Below are positions 9,101-21,200 of a DNA stretch of 64,000 bases, in pieces (the stretch's first letter is position 1; each line of letters begins with the position of its first letter). Origin of the DNA: Paragordius varius (lineage: Eukaryota > Animalia > Nematomorpha); assembly GCA_964247055.1 (NCBI GenBank), contig OZ176055.1, positions 868,001 through 932,000 on the forward strand. The letters are read 5' to 3'. Both the position numbers and the translations under genes were made by a program. The notes beneath the pieces were generated by a model, which worked only from the letters and a program-made list of their open reading frames with translations, was not told the DNA's origin and searched no databases.

Positions 9101-11467
9101 TCGTCCATATGATCATCTATTAAGCAATTTTTGTATGTATTCTTGACATACTTCATTTTTGAATATGCCGTTTCACACGTGTAAGTTGAGGGGAAAACAG
9201 TTAGGATAACTTGAGCACATTTTTTAATATATTCATATTTATTTGGCACATCTTGCAAAAACTCTACATTACTTTGCGATTCACCTTGAATATAGTCTCC
9301 ATATTAGAATCATTTTTAATATCTACAAATTTTTCAATGATAGCACCTGATCAAAACCGAAATGCGTTGCTTAATATTGGTATCCATATGCCAGGGATTT
9401 TCAACGAATTGTAAGCAATTTTTAATATTTTTTAATTCCTGAAATCAGAATTTCATCTCATTAGACAAAATTAAATTGTCTAGGATTAAATTAATCTCCA
9501 TTAGCGAATTGGGTTATTATTCCCTAGACTTCTATTTAAAATACCAAGTTTATAAGTAATGTCACAAAGGTAGGTTAAAACCCACCATTTGTCACTATTA
9601 ATTTCCCGTCAAACTTTCTTTATTATTAATATTGACTGTCTTAAAACAAAAAATCTATTTATAGTTTGCTAAGGCTTAACCATCTCACAGTGGTATACAA
9701 AAGAATATCATCAAACTCATTGTGGATATCTTTCAGAGGGTTTTTTAATTTACGGAAGTAGAATTTACTGCCCCTGTGGTTTACTATCAACCGTTTTAAA
9801 TTACTGAATTGAGGATTCATCTTTTACACGCGAAACCAGGTTTTGCTGGTGAATAAAGCAGTGAATTGATCGAATATTTTGCGAATTATATTTGTTTTTC
9901 AAAAGAATAATAAATTCTTTTCCAATCATAGAGGGACAGCCATCTGTGCAGAGGGAAATATACCATTATTATCGAAAAAAATGCTAATTATTCAAGAAAA
10001 TCACTCTCTTTCGTGGTATTATATATTGGTAAAATTTTTAAACTCGTTCATTATGTTGTCGATGCAAAATCTCACAAGAGCACACACTGAGGAGCTGAAC
10101 TAATATCAGTGCTAAATCAATGGCAATAATAAAATATTTGTAATTTTTCAGACCCAATAAATATATTTAAATAATGCGTCAAGCACATGTTAAATCAGAA
10201 AGTTGAAGTTTTTTAATTTGCCTCATGATTTGATCTTTACTATGGAATTTATCAAATAAAAAAGTGCAACCATTTATTAGACATTCTTTTATTAGTTGGC
10301 AATCAGTAAACGGTTTTATATTTTTTCCTAAAATATAGAAAATTTCATACGAAGCTAATGTTACAGCTTTTTCCTAGGAGAAAGCTATGGACTTAATAGA
10401 TTTTTCTTCCTGGTATAATTCTTTAATCTTTTAATAATTTTCGTTTCTTTACACATGATTTTCTGGTTTGTGAGAATATGTATTGTAAAATGTCTTTCAA
10501 TAAGGTATTTTAATTATGTTGTCCTTACATATAAGATAGGGGACTTTATTAAAACGACAAAGAATTTTTCTCATTCTCTTTTTAAAAGGAATGATTTTCA
10601 AAGAATAATTTACGTTTTTCAGGATGTCATCCTTTGTATTTATGTTTAATCAAAAAGAGGTAAATAATTTGATTGCTAAAAAAATAGGTCGAAATTTAAT
10701 GATGTTGATTTGAAAAATATTAATGGAAATGAGTTATTAAAAATGATGCAGGATAGCAATGAAAAGAATATGTATATGCATGTTTGGGTGAAAGGATTGC
10801 TTAAACACAAAAAAGAATGCAATAATTTCAAAATAGAAAAGAAAAAAGAACGCAGAAACAAAAAGAACGTGTACCAAAATTTTTAAATCATTTTAATGTA
10901 GGAAAATTTTTCTACATTTTAATGTAGGAAAATTTTTCTACATTTTAATTTGAGTAAAACTAAAATTAAATCTAATTAAATAAATTAATATTGAAATAAG
11001 CGAAAATCCGATTAGTATTTTAAAATTTCTACAATAAAAAAAATAATTTTAATAATATGGTCATAGGGCAATTTTAAAGCACTCTTAGGGCCGCATGCGG
11101 CCCGCGGTTTGAGTATCACTAATCTAAATTTTGCTACATATAAATTGTTTATAATCATATACCTTACAGTCGTATTTCAAAATATATAGCATCCTATACC
11201 AAAACATTCCGTGCGAATTTAGGTAAAAAACAGTATTAGTTAATAAAAATCGCATAATAATTATGTCTTAACAATCTTGACCTATTTTAGCCAATTTAGA
11301 TAATTACCTGTAGCTGTTTCCTGATGAACTTTTCGTATGGTTGGGGCTTTTAAGGTGTCGCCCTCAGTTATCAAATTGTAAGCATGCCACATATCTTCAT
11401 TTTCTTCGGCGATCATAACTATGGTGCCTTTACGATCCCTATCTATTGCACGATGTACTATTCTCAT
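3192..11467 (-). CDS. pelo: Protein pelota homologue (Dom34; ribosome rescue, eRF1 family), 7 exons, about 442 aa
   Basis: Exons 11467-11308, 8564-8388, 7966-7787, 7429-7229, 6115-6046, 4889-4560, 3402-3192; all GT-AG, phases consistent, 1329 nt in total. Motifs: EDMWHAYNLI, KMGGYHTLDLE, MQEGLAHICLVT, ASPGFVKDQF, HSSSGFKHSL, FSSLHVSGEQLDQLTGIAAILRYP. Confidence 0.96.
3785..4500. repeat. Tandem repeat, about 120-130 bp unit, 5-6 degenerate copies, in the last pelota intron
   Basis: The anchor caaaatccatag/taat recurs at about 3895, 4025, 4135, 4263 and 4389, each followed by tcaat...acacacttt...tttaaatc..ttc..agat..tcacc blocks. Confidence 0.85.
5469..5736. mobile_element. TA-target MITE family A (about 230-290 bp, about 100-bp TIRs CAGTAAAAA-TGAAATTATACGGACAAAA...); at least 15 copies in the window
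   Basis: Well-bounded copies at 5469-5736, 14180-14410, 29328-29577, 35322-35568 and 58592-58872 with TA flanks. More degenerate copies near 2.4-2.9, 3.5-3.8, 15.4, 16.1, 33.4, 37.8, 38.7, 40.6, 41.0, 41.6 and 63.8 kb. The TA TSD suggests Tc1/mariner-type mobilisation. Confidence 0.85.
6203..7160. mobile_element. TA-target MITE family B (CCATTTAC...GTAAATGG termini, subterminal ~20-bp GAACAATTCAAATTCACCCT repeats); this copy carries extra internal sequence
   Basis: Inverted termini and tandem subterminal 20-mers at both ends. Other copies at 30691-~30957, 32846-33196, 34605-34895, 36427-36684, 36978-37248 and 39860-40173. Confidence 0.85.
8819..11121 (-). mobile_element. Decayed hAT (Buster/SPIN-like) DNA transposon in pelota intron 1
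   Basis: Perfect 8-bp TSD ATCTAAAT (8811-8818 and 11122-11129, nnnTAnnn pattern). TIRs CAGTGGTACTCA / TAGTGATACTCA (reverse complement). Subterminal GGGCCGCATGCGGCCC palindrome. ORF remnant 9046-9258 encodes a hAT dimerisation-domain-like sequence (FPSTYTCETAYSKMKYVKNTYKNCLIDDHMDDILRL). Confidence 0.9.
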
Positions 11468-11534
11468 CTCAAAAATCTAGGGTTAACACAATCGAAACCA
11501 ATCATATGCCTTAATATTATTTAAATCTAAAGAC

Positions 11535-12783
11535 ATGTTGCAAGATACAAAAAACGCAAAATGTGATATTGATTTCAATCAATTGATCAACAAAGCCATG
11601 CACATCAAAAATAAGCTTAAATCTTTGAAAGAATTCGTAAAATTCCGATTTTAAATTCACGTTTTAGAGTAAAGATTTGCAAGAAATATCGGTCAACGAT
11701 GTTAAGGACCTAACTTTTCATAAATCGTTAATTTTGGAAAGCATTTATTTAAATCAACTTAAAGCTGAAAATCACGCTCTTAAAGAGGTATTATTTTATG
11801 GTTTAAAATTTAATTATAGAGTATCGAAGAGCACAAAGCAATCCTTGAAATTATTATGAAGAAATATCGTTTACAAATAACCAAAATGTTGGAAGTTAAT
11901 AAAATGATTAAACCTGATTGTAATCCTGTGGATCACTGTAAAGTAATTGTTTTTTCCTAAATTTGATTCAAAAAATTATATTTACCACATATATATAATT
12001 ATTTTAATATTATTATAATTTTTTAAAACGTTCAACTCGGGTTTTCTCTATTTTTTGGATGGTCATAAAATATTTTTTATTGTTTTGAATATAATTTCAT
12101 AAAAAATTTGTATTCAAGCAAATTAGTTGCTTATTTTTTATATTTTAATTATATAGTTTTTACATCTATAATCATTTATTATTTAATAAAAAAAAATTCC
12201 TATCATCTTTTTAAAGGCAAAAAATAAAAGGTATAAGATTATAATTTTATTAAAAAAACCATAATTTTTATTCTAATTTATCGCGTAACACTTTTAACTT
12301 TATATTTTACAATCTTAATTAGGGTTTATAAAAAATATATTGATTTTTTACTTTTTAAGATTTTTTTATCTTCAGAAAGTTGACATTTTGGCTCACAAGA
12401 TTGAGGATATGGCACGAGTTATGTCTAAAGCTGTTTCGTTAGACACAAAAATCCATATGTCAGATAATTCTGTCCAAAATTCGAAATCACCTCAAAAATC
12501 TCCGAAGAAAACTCAGTTAGAAATTGGAGCCTGCGAACAAACAAAAGATTCTTCAATACTATCTCAGCAACAAAGTTTTAATTATAAAACATTGTTGTAT
12601 GAATTGGATACATTAACACAAGAAAACGTTGAATTACGTATGTTACTTAGATCGTTTCCCCTTATAGCTCAGAAAAGAGTTAAATTGACTGAAAACATTA
12701 CTGGCCTGGACAAAAAGAGCAATCAAAATACTAAAATTGCTACAAATGGATTATTGCTTGAAAACGGAGCCAAGCATGATTAA
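11535..12783 (+). CDS. FGFR1OP2: FGFR1 oncogene partner 2 / SIKE family coiled-coil protein (STRIPAK-associated), 4 exons, about 250 aa
   Basis: Exons 11535-11636, 11668-11787, 11820-11942, 12376-12783. The spliced product aligns in register with remembered human FGFR1OP2: LINKAMHIKNKLKSLKEFSKDLQEI vs LIEQTTALNKRVEAMKQYQEEIQEL; QLKAENHALKESIEEHKAILEIIMKKYR vs ELQQENKELRTSLEEHQSALELIMSKYR; HKIEDMARVMSKAVSLD; LTQENVELRMLL. Confidence 0.88.
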
Positions 12784-12989
12784 ATGATATTAATGAATAA
12801 TTTTATACACGATATTTATTTAATAAATAGCATATGTTTTAAAAAGATAAAGTATATGGATTTAATAGATTTGGAAGTTTGTGGTTAAAATTTACCATTT
12901 TTCTGTCATAAGCAACATTTTCAACCATACGCAACATTATCGATTTCAAATGTAAAAATGTTGCGTTTGGTTGAAAAAAGGTTGCATTT

Positions 12990-13175
12990 GTGCTAGAAAA
13001 AAAATGTTTTTTAAAACATCAAACGCTAGAATTGGAGAATGAATTTCATTTTAATCGATATTTGACACGCAGGAGGCGATATGAAATAGCAAACTTGCTG
13101 GGACTCACTGAACGCCAAGTTAAAATTTGGTTCCAAAATCGACGTATGAAATGGAAAAGGGATAATAAATCTTAG
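12990..13175 (+). pseudogene. Hox-class homeobox fragment (residues ~8-60 intact, N-terminal arm disrupted, no ATG); pseudogene or orphan exon
   Basis: [53 protein letters not shown]. There is an in-frame TGA at about 12972 and no Met upstream in frame. A possible acceptor TAG lies at 12994-12996. Confidence 0.7.
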
Positions 13176-13519
13176 TAAAGTGCAGCTCATATATGGCAAA
13201 AATATGATATAAGAATGGATTGCTGATACGCTGGACAAACGAAACATTGTATTAAAAAATCATCTCAAACGCTTAGCTATTTTTACTTTTAGATATTCGT
13301 GATATAAGATTGAATATATATAAACTTATTTAAAATAACTGAAAATAATCTCAATGTAGTTCATTTGTTAACCAAATATTTTAAATGATTAAATGTCACA
13401 AATAAAACACTCGACGACTTTGGAGCCATTGAAAATTTAGCTTCCTTTCACAGTAAAACTTATATTAAAAAGGAAAAACAATATTATTCGCCAACAATCT
13501 AATTAAATTCAATTATACC

Positions 13520-13790
13520 AAATACATAAGCCCATACCATATATACTTAATCTTAACCCGATTAACAACGTCATCAGAAATCTCCGGTTACAATGGGGGT
13601 TGGATACATGTTGAAAATACCCACCCATATTCTTAAAACTATAAAAAATAACTCGGTTGAATTGCCAGCAAAATCCGATCGAACCCCATACCACATGGCT
13701 CAACACAATAATTAGGGATTTCGAATCGCTTAATTTAAATCTAGAATTTGTCAGATCAAGAGAAGAGTAGAAAAAACTGGTGTACCGTCA
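13520..13790 (+). mobile_element. Decayed 3' end of a non-LTR retrotransposon ORF2 (RTE/L2-like)
   Basis: Translation with stops: IRNLRLQWGLDTC*...IEPHTTWLNTIIRDFESLNLNLEFVRSREE*KKLV. This resembles the RRLxWxGHV...RPRTTWxDTIxRDL...DRxxWxxLV C-terminus of LINE ORF2. Confidence 0.55.
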
Positions 13791-15225
13791 ATTAATGGCG
13801 AATCCCTGAAAACTTGAAAAAGCAAAAGATTGATATTTGTCAACACCTTGATTTTTTGATTTTTATATTGAAATTAAGTGTATAATCATTCATCCCTATA
13901 CCTTGTTTCATAGCCCAAACAATAGAGATCTTTAAAAAAAACTTAAGTTAAAAATAGGGTTCCTTTGAAAAATATTTGGTTATACTAGTATTTTTATAAT
14001 TTAAACAATTACATTATATTCAGGTTAATATACGGTTTGAAAAAAAAATTTTTTCGCTTATCAAAGATAGATGATTGTTTTAAGAATTAATGTGAAATTA
14101 TATATATTTTGTTGTATTTTTATATACAACTATCAATAATTGTAAGGTAAAATTTTATATATAAAAATTATATTTTTTACAGTAAAAATTGAGAATATAA
14201 GGACAAAACTTTGAAATATATAGACAAATATTTTTTTTTCAAAAGCCAACCATACTTTTTTAAACCTTATTTTTTCGTATACATACTCTATATCTTACTA
14301 TTTTAAACAATAAGTTTTATTTTAAATAAATCAAGATTTAAAAAGTATGGGGTCTTTTAGTAAAAAAAATATATTTATAATTTTTTTCCGTATAATTTCA
14401 CTATTTACTGTAAAAAATGTATGGATAAGATTTTTTTTTTAAATCTTAAAAAATTTCAAAAACTATCATATTATTTATCAGGGTAAACAAAATAAGGATT
14501 AGAATACACCCACATTCTACTCTCAAATATTTTTGTAAATTGCCATTTTAATAGGTTATTACCAGTTTTATTTTACTGATCGGCGGCCTATAATAAGAAA
14601 CGCTCATGTATTATACATTTCAAAGGCTTTTTTACAAGGTGACATTTTTTCACTAACTTTTTTTTGTAGAAAGAAAACCTATGATATGTTTAATATTATT
14701 CAGGCCTTAAAGTATTATAATAATTTAACTCACTCAACAATTATGTAATTTCTAAGCCTCTTACTTACTATAATTTACTTGTATAATAAGGATGAAATAT
14801 GATTAATTATATGAATCGTTTATAATTAATATATATATATATATATATATAGGATAATCAAGATTGTATAATTAGATTATATTGGGAAATTTGATTTGCT
14901 GATATATATATAAAATAATTTCTAGATTATGTATAAGTAGTTTAATAAAATAAATATCCACTGATTGTAAATTAGAGGGTAGGGGTGGGGTGTATGTGCA
15001 GGAAGATACAATAAAATATATATTTACTTTAAAAGGTAATTATAATAATAGAATATAAAATCCCTGAATGGTTTTGCATATGTAACATTGCTAAAAAATC
15101 AAAGGTATATTATATAAATTTTCTAAATAAAATATTTATATATATCCATTTAAATTAGGTAATTGTCTAATTTGGCTTATACTATAGTATTTAATGTTAA
15201 AAAACGATAAACCCCAAAAAATTAA

Positions 15226-18200
15226 TCAAAAATCAGGTGATCGCGAATAAATGCGTGCAATTTCCTTCACCCTTTCCAGCAAGGTAACAGATGATATTCT
15301 GGCTTCTGGATCCTTTTCCCAACAATCATTTAGGGTTGAAACTAAGTTGCTTGATAGCTAAAAAAACAGTAAAATAAAAATTTTAAATCTTAAGTATTTC
15401 AACAGAATCAAAAAAGATATATACAATAAAAATTAAAATTATACGGAGAAAACGCATAAATATAAAGTCAAATATTATTTATTAATTCTGTATTTTACGA
15501 TTGTATCTAAATAACATATAAAGGAAAAATTAAGGTTTAAAAAGGGTATGGTTGTCTTTTGAAAAAAAATATTTGTCTTTATAATTTTAAGCGTATTGTC
15601 CGTATTTATATTATAACTGTGTCTGTTTTTTAATCAAAAAAACTTGAAACATTCTCTAAAAAATTTATAACCTTACATAAGCATGTATAGTTCATCTTTT
15701 TCGTTTTTTTATAGTTATCCGCTTTATCGTATAAAATTAAATTATAAAGCAACGCTTTTTTGATTAATTACTTTAACATAAATCAAATTATCAAAAACTC
15801 GGTCGGATATTAAAAAATATTCTTTTGGTTAAAATAAGTAATTGTTTTGAAATGTTTTGAATTTTATCGAATAAATTTACCTTATTATCTTTCCAACTTT
15901 GAGGTATATAGGGTCTTAAACCATTACGGCAAATGGCTTGTTGCATTTGTTCCAATGAGGGATTTAAACCAAGTTCCTTTTCGTAGGGTAATGCATATTT
16001 AGTTGGGTTATCAGTATTATCTAACCAATAAAAAAATGATATAGAGACAAAATTAACTAATCTAACTTTAATTAATATTTAGGAAAAAGTTTACAGTAAG
16101 TAAAAATATTATTAAATTATTAATTTCTAAAAGACAACCATACTTTTTAAATCTATTTTTTTATCGTAACTCATTGTTTAAAATTGCAAATATGATATAG
16201 AGATGAATATTGAAAACACAATCAATTATAAATTTTACAATGGTAGTAAATATTTTATATAAGTTTTTTAAAATTTAAAAAGTATGGTATGTCTTTTAAA
16301 CAAAATATATGTCTTACTTAATATTTGCGATTTGTCCGTATAATATCAATTTTTAATGTATTAACATTTTAACAACAATAATATTTAACAAACTAATGGT
16401 ACAATTAACCTGAGATTTGTAAAAATATAATTAGGCAGTTAAAAATTTCTTTGCCATTCACGGATTTGGGTTAATTTGTATCCAAAAATAATTTTAAAAT
16501 AGGTTCAACAATAATCAATAATAAAATAGAAAATTTAAAAAATGTATTTCAAAGTATATACTTATATCAGTACAACGTGACAATAATTCCCAAATGACCA
16601 AGGCTATGGCATAAACATCAACTTTGAGAAAGCATTCCATATTGTAAGAGATGGCGCCTTCCAGAATTTCAGGGGCCATATACCTCAATGTTCCTTTCTA
16701 AAGCATAATTTTCGGAATATGATAAAATTAATTTTTTTTAACAAATTGAAAAAACTTTTATAAATATTTTCAAAATACAGTAATGTATCCTTTATTTTAT
16801 AAAAAATTTATTTTTTTGTTTGTTAGTGTATAAATATTTGGTAAAGAATGGAAAAAACAAGAGCTCTATGGTTTTAACAATATCATATTCATCAAAAAAG
16901 TATAAGAATTACCATAGAGCTATTGCTTTTTCCATTTTTTACCAAATAATTATATCATCCCTATATTTAAATATTTCTTCAAAAAAATTAACAAAACAGA
17001 AGAATTTTTTTTTGGTAAAAAAATTACCTGATTAAGTTCACACTTAAAAGCCGAACTCCCGTGCAAAGTTTCTTTGCCCTCCATAATGAGTGAAGATCCA
17101 AAATCACCAATTTTAGCGCGTAAACCATTATTATTATCATTACGAAATCCTTCAAAACTATTATTCTCATTGTTTCGGTGTAGGAATATGTTTTTACTCT
17201 TAATATCTTTGTGGACTATGCTAGGTTTATACGTAAAGTGTGATTTTAATTTTTGTACACAGCTATTATTGTAATTATTGCTTATGTTGTCGGAACCTAA
17301 TAAATTATTTTCAGAGCTGTTTTTCCTCCTGTAAAATAAAGCATTATTATTATTATTATTATTAACATTGCTAATGTGATTAGTGCGGCAGCTTGTTGTG
17401 TCCATATTTTCGGACGAGGAAGTAAAAATATTGGCCGTTACCATGGTAACATCTTGATTACTCGTTAGCAGGGTGGATTCATCGCTACATGAAATTAAAC
17501 GTTCATGATGCTTAATAACATCATTATTAGAATCTGTTGAGCTAATTTTATTCGCGTTGTCACAGTCATTGCTATATAATTGAGTGGGTGAAGGTGTATG
17601 ACTAACATAGCATGAATCTCTGTCTTTACAGCTGTTTCTTTGGGGGGAAAGATGGCGGTTAACTCCCAGATCAGCTGATTTATGATGACATGGTGCTTCT
17701 TCTTTATTATTGCAATCAAGGTGATCATACAAATTATTTGTGTTATGTAAGTATGCTAAGCCAAAACACATATCAAGCACAATGGTAACGAGTTCGGGCC
17801 ATGTAACAGTGTGCAAGGATAAATAATCATACAGAGATCCACAGTTCTATACAGGTAAATTAAAAAATGAAAAAAAATGATCTCCAAAAAAAACAGATTG
17901 AAAAAAGAGGCTAATTAGTGACTCTCCAAAAAAAACAAAATTTTGTGGCTTATATGCTTAAGATATTGCGGGTATTTATCTATAAAAAATTGTTAAACTG
18001 CATTTTAATGATGCAATAATAAACCTTTATATCTAAAACGAACAAAACAAAAAAACGATTTCAGACCCTAATCATGGTTTTTAGCAATTAATTTTTGTCT
18101 TAGGTCTCATATTTAAAATTTTATAAAAAACATGGTAAAATTGACAATAAAATACATTGTAAAACTTTAGTAAACCTGATACGGGGTAATAAGGAATGGC

Positions 18201-21200
18201 TTAGGAATAATGAGTTCTTGAGGATCTAATGGAGAAGTTTCAAATTGCAATGTGACAGTTGACAAAGTATCATTCTGTTCTTCAAATATACATGATGCAT
18301 ATATCAGGGGTAAAATGTTGGGATGTCCGTTATGATAAGCAAATTTAATTTCTTCACCAGTTACAACTTCAGCTGTTGTCATCTCGGTACAAATCTTATT
18401 GTTTTTGCTATAATTATTAGTTTGAGCAGTTAATGAGTATGGTATATCAAAAAGTAAAAGGGCATAAACCCTAAGTTCACGATACCAGCAATCAATATTC
18501 CGTTCATGATATTGTTTTATAACAATGGATGATGTGATTGTTTCTAATTGGTTAGTAGTTTCAAGTGAGGAAGGCATGAGGTGATATATAGTTGATATGG
18601 ATGATTTTGATATGATAATAGGTGGGGAATTTAACTTTGAGTTTGTTAAATTACAAGAATTGTCGTGAACAAACAAATTTAAACGAACTAGCCATGTTAA
18701 AAGATTCCTAATTTCATGTGGAATGATTTTATCATTTTTGTCAGCGTAGACACGTGATTTAGGATTTTTAGCCAATTTTTTAGTTTTCCTTTTTGCTGAA
18801 GTAAAGGGCAAAAACGCCTTTTTACATGTTTCAGGACTATAATATTCAACTTTAACATCTCCATTAATTTTAGTGCTATTTCTTTGTTTTACCAAAGCTA
18901 ATTGGGTATTAAACTGGTTCCTAACGTAGGATTCGTAAAAGGGTGAGATTAAGTCAAGGGACATTAAAAAACTGAGATAAAGTACAGAAGATAAACAACA
19001 ACTAATCTCGTCCATTCGGCCGGTGGAATGTTGAATATAATTGTTACGATAAGAAAGGTGGTTTAAATTTTCTTGACACAACATTTTTACCATCATAGAT
19101 TGTTGGCAAGAAGAGGTAATATCATACATACCTGGGTCATTATCATTGTTTAATTCATTTGAGATATTGTTTTTTGAAGGGTGATAAATACTTGATTGCG
19201 TTGAAACATTTTGATGTTTTGTAGATAGGACATTTTTTAAATGAAAAAACTTGACAATCCTTAACCAAACATTGTACCAGTCAGAATTTTTTGTTACAGA
19301 AGTACTTAAGCCTAAATACCCAGAAGGAGAATACAGCAATGGGTCATACAAGTATTGGAGGTAGTTTTCATTAGCCACCATATGGGATAAATTTTTGCCA
19401 CTACCCAATTCACGGTTTTTAAGGGCGTTTGCAGATTTGCGTTTAGTATTGTGATTGATATTATTGTTTTTACAGGCAGCATAATATATAATAAGCCCAG
19501 CTCCAATTGCTATAAAAAGTAAGCAAATAGGGATTAATGTTATAGCTGTAACCAGGAGTTTATGGGAAGTCGGATTAGACAGAGCTATTCGTATGAATGT
19601 CGTGAAATTCATGTTGGCCATCGAATTATTATGTAAGGGGGGAGTATTGTAAAAATGATGGTGAGGAATGGTATTTGTTTTTCTGGGCAAGGATGAAAAA
19701 GTCGTTTTATGTTGAGTATTCAATGATGAGGTAGTAGTTGGTTTTTGTGTTCTTGAGGTGAATGTGTTTGCTAAAATAAAATCAAAATAGTTTTAGTTTT
19801 TGGAGACGTGTTTTGAATATAAATATGCATCAATAACGCGAAAAATTAATAATATATAACTGATTGATAAGGATTGTTTTAGATCCGAAATATTTTTGAT
19901 ATTATTTTGTTACAATGTAAAATATTTGTCTTTTACTTAAAGAAAATTTTAAATTATGATATAATACTGCATCCCCTTTTAATTTTTTTGCAGACGATTA
20001 CGTTTTGGGGGTAGTTATGTGTGTATCACAGAGCTTAATCTGCTATATAACTACTGTTTTTTAAAGTTGTTTTGTAAATAAATTATAATTATCAAACATT
20101 GTTCGCCTGATTTAGAAAAACCCTAATTTTTTTTAATCTTATGTAGTCTAAAATTAAAATACCTCAAAACCCATTTCAAACAGTTAATTTAAAAAAAATC
20201 TAAAAAGATGAGAATATTTTAACAATATTAGCCTAAATGACTAAAGAATGTACAAATTTTTAAATTTAATCCAATATAAATAAATACCTTTACGTTCGAA
20301 TTTAAAATGACTCTGAGATAAAAAACCACCCCAAAAAGGCTAAAGTATTAATAAATTTTAGCATAAATGTCGCTTTAGAAACAGACTTTTATAACATATT
20401 AAAGTTGGACATACCCTTTCTTGAGATATTGATATTAATTTCATATTTATATTTTATAGATTTTGCATATTTTAGGCAACTTTTTTAAAAAAATCACTTT
20501 GCATTTTCTTAGTTCTTGGGATTTTATGCTAGCTGTTCATTAAATATTAATTACCAAAGAAAGTCAATCAATTATTTTTCTATGTAATTATATTAATGGC
20601 CAATTTATAATATTTTTCATTGGCAAAAAAAATATAATTAATAAACAAACACCATCAAAATAAAAAAAATGATTAAACTTCCGGTATTTTTGCAAATAAT
20701 TACGTGATTAAAATTATGCTTATGCGTTGTAAAAATGCAAGATAATTATTTTAAAAAATAATATTATTAAAAATTAAGCATTTTAAACGATTTATTAATC
20801 ACATATCTGATTTTTCTTAAAAATCCTAATTAAAAAATATATAAAATTATTTATATATTTCACTTGTCGTTAGTTTTGGTAAGCTCGGTTCCCGTAAAAA
20901 ATATTCTAGCATGGAGTTACCATGGTTACAGCGTTGCCCATGGCAACAACAAAACACATGATGGGCGATTACGGGACCACCATTGCGTCCGGTTCCACTG
21001 ATTGGGTAACATTCAGGAAGTTCTTTGCAATTGGCATCATTCAACCAACATCCTGTATGTATATTAATTAATGAATTTAATATAGATTAGATAAAAACGC
21101 ATTAAATTTTTTACAGTCAAAAATGCATAAAAGTAGAAAGAATTATAATTAATAATTTTAATGGGCAGGGAATATGATGTAGCACGCTATATTTGGACAG

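Follow-up and report, generated by a model that had tools for sequence, protein, structure and literature searches.

A partial homeobox beside a palindromic MITE, probably a dead fragment copied from a neighbouring Hox5-type gene

An open frame in the 64,000-nt stretch of AT-rich DNA analysed here (the window; C6:868001-932000 in a genome of 110.5 Mb and 44 contigs; G+C approximately 25%) encodes most of a homeodomain, yet no in-frame ATG is found 5' of residue M54 of that domain. The question raised by this locus is whether the frame belongs to a Hox gene of unusual class, to the decayed remains of one, or to neither. The first-pass annotation had described helices 1-3 as intact and free of stops, which is borne out by a frame on the plus strand (Table 1) matching the Pfam homeodomain profile PF00046 with 77.9 bits against a cut-off of 22.9 (E 5.1e-22; profile positions 5-57). 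The residues that it had singled out (K10, H11, Y32, L37-L38, V45 and W56, along with a set of central-class residues) were all read correctly. In addition, a six-frame search of the whole genome detected no further Hox homeobox within the window, as had been stated.

Table 1. Positions of the features discussed. Coordinates without a prefix are those of the window; L032 is C6:815000-823000, in which the parent gene lies on the minus strand.
Feature	Position	Strand	Details
Antp-type central-class homeobox	C6:802491	+	78 kb upstream of the copy; six-frame genome search
Parent exon 2	L032 4554-4750	-	starts DDAKKCRTAYTRHQ; reads DDAKKCRTAYTRHQTLELEKEF...WKKDNKS, stop
Parent intron	~610 nt	-	acceptor tcatag|AT
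Parent exon 1	L032 5362-5969	-	246-codon open frame; YPWM at residue 195; phase-1 donor CATG|GTAACA at residue 203
Last exon of SIKE/FGFR1OP2-like gene	12376-12783	+	acceptor ...cttcag|AAA; TAA stop 12781-12783; AATAAA at 12824
Stowaway-like palindromic MITE	12895-13007		left TA 12893-12894; right TA degenerate; repeat search and alignment
Open frame	12975-13175	+	14 residues, partial homeodomain (52 residues), stop; ORF list
Copied coding part of parent exon 2	13016-13175	+	homeodomain residues 11-60 (helices 1-3), K, S, stop TAG; local alignment
Copied start of parent 3'UTR	13176-13273	+	98 nt; 6 substitutions, 4 indels (2, 1, 17 and 1 nt); alignment
Dispersed 332-bp repeat	13475-13806		TIRs ATTCGCC...GGCGAAT, no poly(A); apart from copied block
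Ubx/abd-A-type gene	C6 1.70 Mb		PDB ranking
Abd-B-type gene	C6 3.15 Mb		PDB ranking, 110.6 bits against 88.7 for Hox-C9 (reverse order to the fragment)

The homeobox is not the orphan that it had been taken for. Besides an Antp-type homeobox 78 kb upstream, the six-frame search (61-residue query) identified a paralog on the opposite strand, 61 kb away at C6:819556-819723 (-), whose protein is 88% identical. This paralog lies in a complete Hox gene at C6:819.5-821.0 kb (-), the intact source copy that the annotation had envisaged and which we refer to as the parent. Local alignment of the window with the parent gene yields a single block of 258 bases, from 13016 to 13273. The coding part of the block differs from the parent at 5 of 160 nt and contains no indel (96.9% identity). 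Three of the differences change the protein (K18N, S36N and K58R) and the other two are synonymous. The 30 aligned reference central-class homeodomains show no exception to K18 or K58, so that K18N and K58R are derived in the copy. The 3'UTR part is 93.8% identical to the parent, so that it is about twice as diverged as the coding part, in counts too small for a test. Together with a pN/pS of 0.37 (which, with just five substitutions, has no statistical power), the lower coding divergence is what would be expected if constraint had acted on the parent lineage only. The 52 copied codons still contain neither a stop nor a frameshift. In a homeodomain tree, a check proposed at the outset, the copy pairs with the parent with 99/98 support, while the tree cannot fix the paralogy group of the pair.

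A complete homeodomain includes an N-terminal arm (residues 1-9, with basic residues 3 and 5), and homology to the parent begins only at residue 11. The window copy likewise has neither the upstream YPWM exon nor the start codon of a functional Hox gene, and the parent's YPWM exon 1 occurs once in the whole 110-Mb genome, in the parent itself. At the other end, homology stops approximately 115 nt past the position of the parent stop codon, and beyond 13273 the sole match is to AT-rich sequence of low complexity, located 730 nt downstream in the parent gene, which is not true homology. The claim that the sequence had been recently pseudogenised thus agrees with our data: the copy is young, 3-6% diverged from its source, and devoid of the parts needed for expression.

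The segment preceding the block had been interpreted as a Hox9 arm decayed by frameshifts. It is instead part of a transposable element: positions 12895-13007, including GGTTGCATTTGTGCTAGAAAAAAAATG, align with a palindromic MITE family with more than 100 matches in the genome. A search with 12885-13000 gave 144 scored genome matches, often on both strands at one place. Eleven copies were aligned and define a palindrome of about 113 bp with ends CCATTTTTCAG...CTGAAAAATGG (also given as CCATTTTTCAGTC...GAAAAATGG) and TA flanks in most copies; internal inverted repeats are present in the window copy as well. The element at 12895-13007 shows the features of a Stowaway-like MITE, being short and noncoding, with terminal inverted repeats, TA flanks and many dispersed relatives. 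The stretch GGTTGCATTTGTGCTAGAAAAAAAATG, which had been read as RLHLC-RKK-C, is the right arm of this MITE, and the right end of the element gives the A8-TG run. About eight junction bases (13008-13015) separate the MITE end from the first base homologous to the parent, and the first 14 codons of the open frame are MITE or junction sequence. The N-terminal arm was never present here, the "broken arm" being the terminal inverted repeat of the MITE plus the junction bases. The locus illustrates that the end of a transposon may be mistaken for a protein motif in decay. A longer Hox copy, into which the MITE would have inserted, was also tried and rejected: the sequence left of the MITE (12784-12889) aligns with the parent intron and the start of exon 2 no better than shuffled sequences do (score 25 against a shuffle mean of 23.2, p 0.28).

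A subunit of the MITE arm, approximately 21 nt long (TGTTGCGTTTGGTTGAAAAAA-like; 12951-13000 in the window), also forms long tandem arrays elsewhere in the genome. These arrays sit at both ends of elements of about 1.3 kb (for example C6:6769800-6771220, C4:514140-515530 and C3:3832490-3833850), which may be larger relatives of the MITE.

Altogether, segment 13016-13273 very likely represents part of the 3' exon of the nearby Hox5-type gene, duplicated at the DNA level and without function, situated beside the end of a MITE. The copy is most likely a young, dead and ordinary gene-fragment pseudogene, which we infer to be silent and decaying. Against a dead fragment one may set the frame that is still open, with its pN/pS of 0.37 (5 substitutions), and an in-frame splice from the upstream gene that is formally possible at AG 12979-12980. 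We envisage that part of the parent exon 2 (residues 11-60, the two-residue tail, the stop codon and approximately 100 nt of 3'UTR) was copied at the DNA level and came to lie only a few bases from the end of a MITE that was already present, downstream of an unrelated gene. The order of events, MITE first and fragment second, is suggested by the divergence values: compared with a consensus built from the other ten aligned copies, the window MITE has 83% identity, and its 17% divergence, against 3-6% for the Hox piece, indicates that it probably predates the fragment. The arrangement could be accounted for by repair of a break at the end of the MITE, during which a template elsewhere was copied ectopically; no diagnostic microhomology or target duplication was found at the copy. 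The locus resembles known duplicated, non-processed gene-fragment pseudogenes in that a short internal gene segment was copied as DNA over a short distance within one chromosome, lacks a promoter, first exon and start codon, borders on the end of a transposon and has diverged little from a parent that is functional. It differs from them in being unusually clean, with no stop or frameshift in 52 codons, and in that its mechanism is one that we infer. The relic is minor in itself, one more young gene-fragment pseudogene; it is useful, among other things, as a case in which the copying of a gene fragment over a short range, beside a MITE, is dated.

A different reading is that the arm-less homeodomain is exonised, serving as an alternative last exon of the gene upstream or of some other transcript. 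The upstream gene has its earlier exons beginning at an ATG at 11535, and its last exon matches the SIKE/FGFR1OP2 family weakly (Pfam E 0.0023, below the curated cut-off). The placement of the homeobox about 200 bp after FGFR1OP2 was right as to position, the frame lying on the same strand 207 bp past the stop codon and the copied block starting 233 bp downstream of the gene, while the identity of that gene is weakly supported. Exonisation would draw on this proximity and shared strand, and on the fact that the frame is open from 12975, the last intron of the upstream gene being of phase 0 and the AG at 12979-12980 staying in the homeodomain frame. However, the sequence at this in-frame acceptor (ttgaaaaaag) is rich in purines and lacks a pyrimidine tract, whereas the better acceptor (ctag|A at 12995-12996) leads to a stop after five codons. 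Moreover, the upstream gene has a stop codon and an AATAAA (at 12824) of its own, and no contig from the RNA data, which are too poor to exclude such a transcript, joins it to the homeobox. In addition, K18N and K58R affect invariant positions, and the fragment lacks residues 1-10, among them the minor-groove arginines. On balance we regard exonisation as unlikely; if it took place, it would yield a chimera of a coiled coil and helices 1-3, or a small protein interfering with Hox function. It is highly improbable that the SIKE/FGFR1OP2-like gene in particular has recruited the piece, or is in the course of recruiting it, as an alternative terminal exon by means of an acceptor created inside the MITE; such a capture would represent an early stage in the emergence, assisted by a transposon, of a coiled-coil-homeodomain chimera or of a mini-protein that interferes with Hox function.

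Two observations concern the surroundings of the upstream gene. A likely GT-AG intron of only 31 nt (gtaaaattcc...cgttttag) occupies positions 11637-11667, after the first coding exon. Head to head with this gene, an N-terminal exon of a protein with a Pelota/eRF1 domain 1 lies on the minus strand at 11285-11467 (Pfam eRF1_1, E 5e-15).

Retroposition had also been proposed, with the aid of a LINE whose 3' end was thought to lie downstream of the homeobox. A 5'-truncated processed pseudogene, made from the parent mRNA by a LINE, would indeed hold just the 3' end of the transcript, from the middle of exon 2 into the 3'UTR, and repeats do occur nearby. The fragment does not cross the junction between exons 1 and 2 and is uninformative as to intron loss. 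The parent's first AATAAA, taken here to stand in for its cleavage site, lies 188 nt past the stop codon, so that the copy ends approximately 75 nt short of it, and no A-run follows 13273. As the copy carries no poly(A) and ends before this signal, it does not look like a retrocopy; nor was a target-site duplication seen by eye. The presumed LINE is probably not one: in place of a LINE tail, the repeat at 13475-13806 bears short terminal inverted repeats. It is more likely, from its structure, a non-autonomous TIR element, with an inverted repeat at 13486-13498 and 13791-13803. A first look gave 1719 candidate copies of this repeat, and the 40 that were scored show 74-87% identity and the same ends. 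A retrocopy is thus a very unlikely origin for the block.

Judged by its sequence, the parent is a complete and conventional Hox gene. Its arm is intact (KKCRTAYTRHQ), with AKKCRTAYTR at the place where the copy has MITE sequence, and its protein ends in KKDNKS before the stop codon. The best named database matches of its homeodomain exon are Hox-B5, Hox-A5, Hox-C5 and Scr, with Hox4 next. Among solved structures in the PDB, Scr ranks as the top single-domain match (103 bits), ahead of Antp (100), Ftz (94) and Hox-A9 (92). A word search with exon 1 returned nothing at E <= 0.001 and no annotated ortholog. In AU tests on the placement of copy and parent together, Hox4 (p 0.44), Hox5/Scr (p 0.07) and Hox6-8 (p 0.17) are all compatible with the data, none being rejected. 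Our designation of the parent as Hox5-type accordingly comes from named matches, motifs and synteny, not from the tree.

The synteny in question involves mir-10. In bilaterians the order Hox5 - mir-10 - Hox4 is conserved, and the slot just upstream of mir-10 is that of Hox5. A match of 21 out of 21 nt to miR-10-5p is found at C6:816691-816711 (-), or L032 1692-1712, on the strand of the parent and 2.8 kb downstream of its stop codon. No second site of this kind exists in the genome, and the linkage applies to the parent, not to the window copy. The site falls on the 5' arm of a predicted hairpin (z -4.2). In an Rfam search over 35 kb around the parent, mir-10 was reported neither at the gathering threshold nor at E <= 0.1, the locus having been found by pattern and folding alone. 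The terminal loop of the hairpin (L032 1600-1725, minus strand) is unusually long and internally paired. With genes of the Hox5/Scr group the parent shares a YPWM hexapeptide with a short linker, T6 and T13, the LTRRRR motif and a WKKDNK tail like that of the aligned vertebrate Hox5 proteins. It departs from them by lineage-specific residues (C4, Y32, S36, L37-L38, G39 and V45), and the window copy departs from them in being a piece of such a gene only. The relic thereby points to a Hox5-type parent that is still linked to the only mir-10 of the genome.

The mixture of central and posterior residues had led to the suggestion of an unusual class akin to the median/posterior mosaic (MedPost) genes. 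H11, Y32, L37-L38 and V45 do match Hox9; all of them are inherited from the ordinary Hox5-type parent. K10, the one Hox9-like residue that is new in the copy, sits at the breakpoint. Scored against PDB homeodomains, the fragment gives 88.9 bits with Antp, 84.8 with Scr, 80.4 with Hox-A9, 74.8 with Hox-C9 and 60.8 with Abd-B. Ubx and abd-A (72-76 bits) rank below Hox-A9, a point in favour of a MedPost-like class; yet Antp and Scr exceed Hox-A9 by 4-8 bits and Abd-B by 24-28 bits, which places the fragment outside the posterior group (Hox9-13/Abd-B). MedPost genes are defined by posterior K3, A14, R18, Y20 and V21 combined with central Q6, LTR(R/K)RR and E59 (PMC5431905). At these positions the fragment has L14, N18, F20, H21 and D59, and the parent K3, T6, L14, K18, F20, H21 and D59, so that only K3 and LTRRRR fit in the parent, K3 being its sole posterior residue of the set. 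The likeness to the MedPost genes of chaetognaths and rotifers is hence confined to the central LTRRRR core and a few residues also present in posterior genes, with Q6, E59, A14, R18, Y20 and V21 all wanting (PMC5431905). Unlike the rotifer set described in the same work (PMC5431905), the Abd-B-type and Ubx/abd-A-type genes found here fit a Hox complement of ecdysozoan type. In a first homeodomain tree the Abd-B gene of this genome was drawn to the branch of copy and parent, but this joined two long branches with 69/0 support; a separate, true Abd-B gene is present in the genome, and the top named matches of the parent are Hox5, then Hox4. Membership of a MedPost-like class is therefore extremely improbable.

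All of the Hox genes found lie on a single contig (C6, 10.1 Mb), scattered over approximately 8.4-9 Mb and out of colinear order. Three of them, at 7.20, 8.07 and 9.17 Mb, we presume from their motifs to be pb-like, lab-like and Dfd-like, respectively. The order along the contig is then Antp-type, Hox5-type, Ubx/abd-A-type, Abd-B-type, pb-like, lab-like and Dfd-like. The Dfd-like homeobox appears to carry an intron inside the homeodomain, before residue ~23. In Nematomorpha, the reported Hox set consists of lab, pb, Dfd, Antp, Abd-A and Abd-B with a second "Dfd" in two species, the genes lying on one scaffold megabases apart, and Hox5/Scr is stated to be absent from both Nematomorpha and Nematoda (PMC11603191). 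The C6 set fits this complement, including a second Dfd/Hox5-like gene and the spread over megabases of one contig; a partial Hox copy like that in the window is not mentioned in that paper (PMC11603191). If the present genome is that of a horsehair worm, a Hox5-type parent conflicts with the stated absence, and the "Dfd duplicate" of that study (PMC11603191) may be the Hox5-type parent described here. Automated Hox counts on this genome would add an extra "Hox" homeobox at the position of the relic.

Finally, a live and complete Hox gene, its arm hidden by a homopolymer error in the assembly or its first exon lying far away, would agree with the open frame and the intact helices 1-3, but we give this almost no credence, because an independent short-read contig from run X1 spans 12822-13070 without a single difference or gap, the sequence at the arm position is MITE and not a frameshifted arm, and no second parent YPWM exon exists anywhere in the genome. 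A further X1 contig matches 13199-13593, again with 0 differences, so that the A8/T6 runs, suspected of being misassembled, and both junctions of the block are reproduced exactly; the parent arm sequence is absent there in any frame. Run X1 may derive from the very sample that was assembled. At 13093, 13109, 13159 and 13172 the variant letters coincide exactly with those of the parent, which indicates that contigs of the paralog had aligned on the copy.

No transcript of the copy was detected in the RNA-labelled runs, which are small. Run X7, which consists of contigs and which we guess to be RNA, touches the homeobox only with pieces of 35-43 bases carrying 4-6 mismatches, at least one of which continues into the sequence of another Hox gene. 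This run also fails to cover the last exon of the upstream gene, and is hence uninformative on the silence of the copy. The sole exact piece from the RNA run (X7, 11375-11410) falls in the Pelota/eRF1-like exon.

Elsewhere in the window, two open frames were seen on the minus strand: one of 518 codons with no Pfam match (18167-19723) and one of 288 codons with a weak protein-kinase match (16950-17816; E 1.6e-6, below cut-off). Runs X3 and X5, labelled as other organisms, contain low-depth contigs identical or nearly identical to parts of the window between 10000 and 15500 (for example X3 at 11584-11854 and 14034-14261, both with 0 differences; X5 at 11434-11584, with 1 difference), as expected if other sequenced organisms carry this animal in or on them, or from carry-over between samples.
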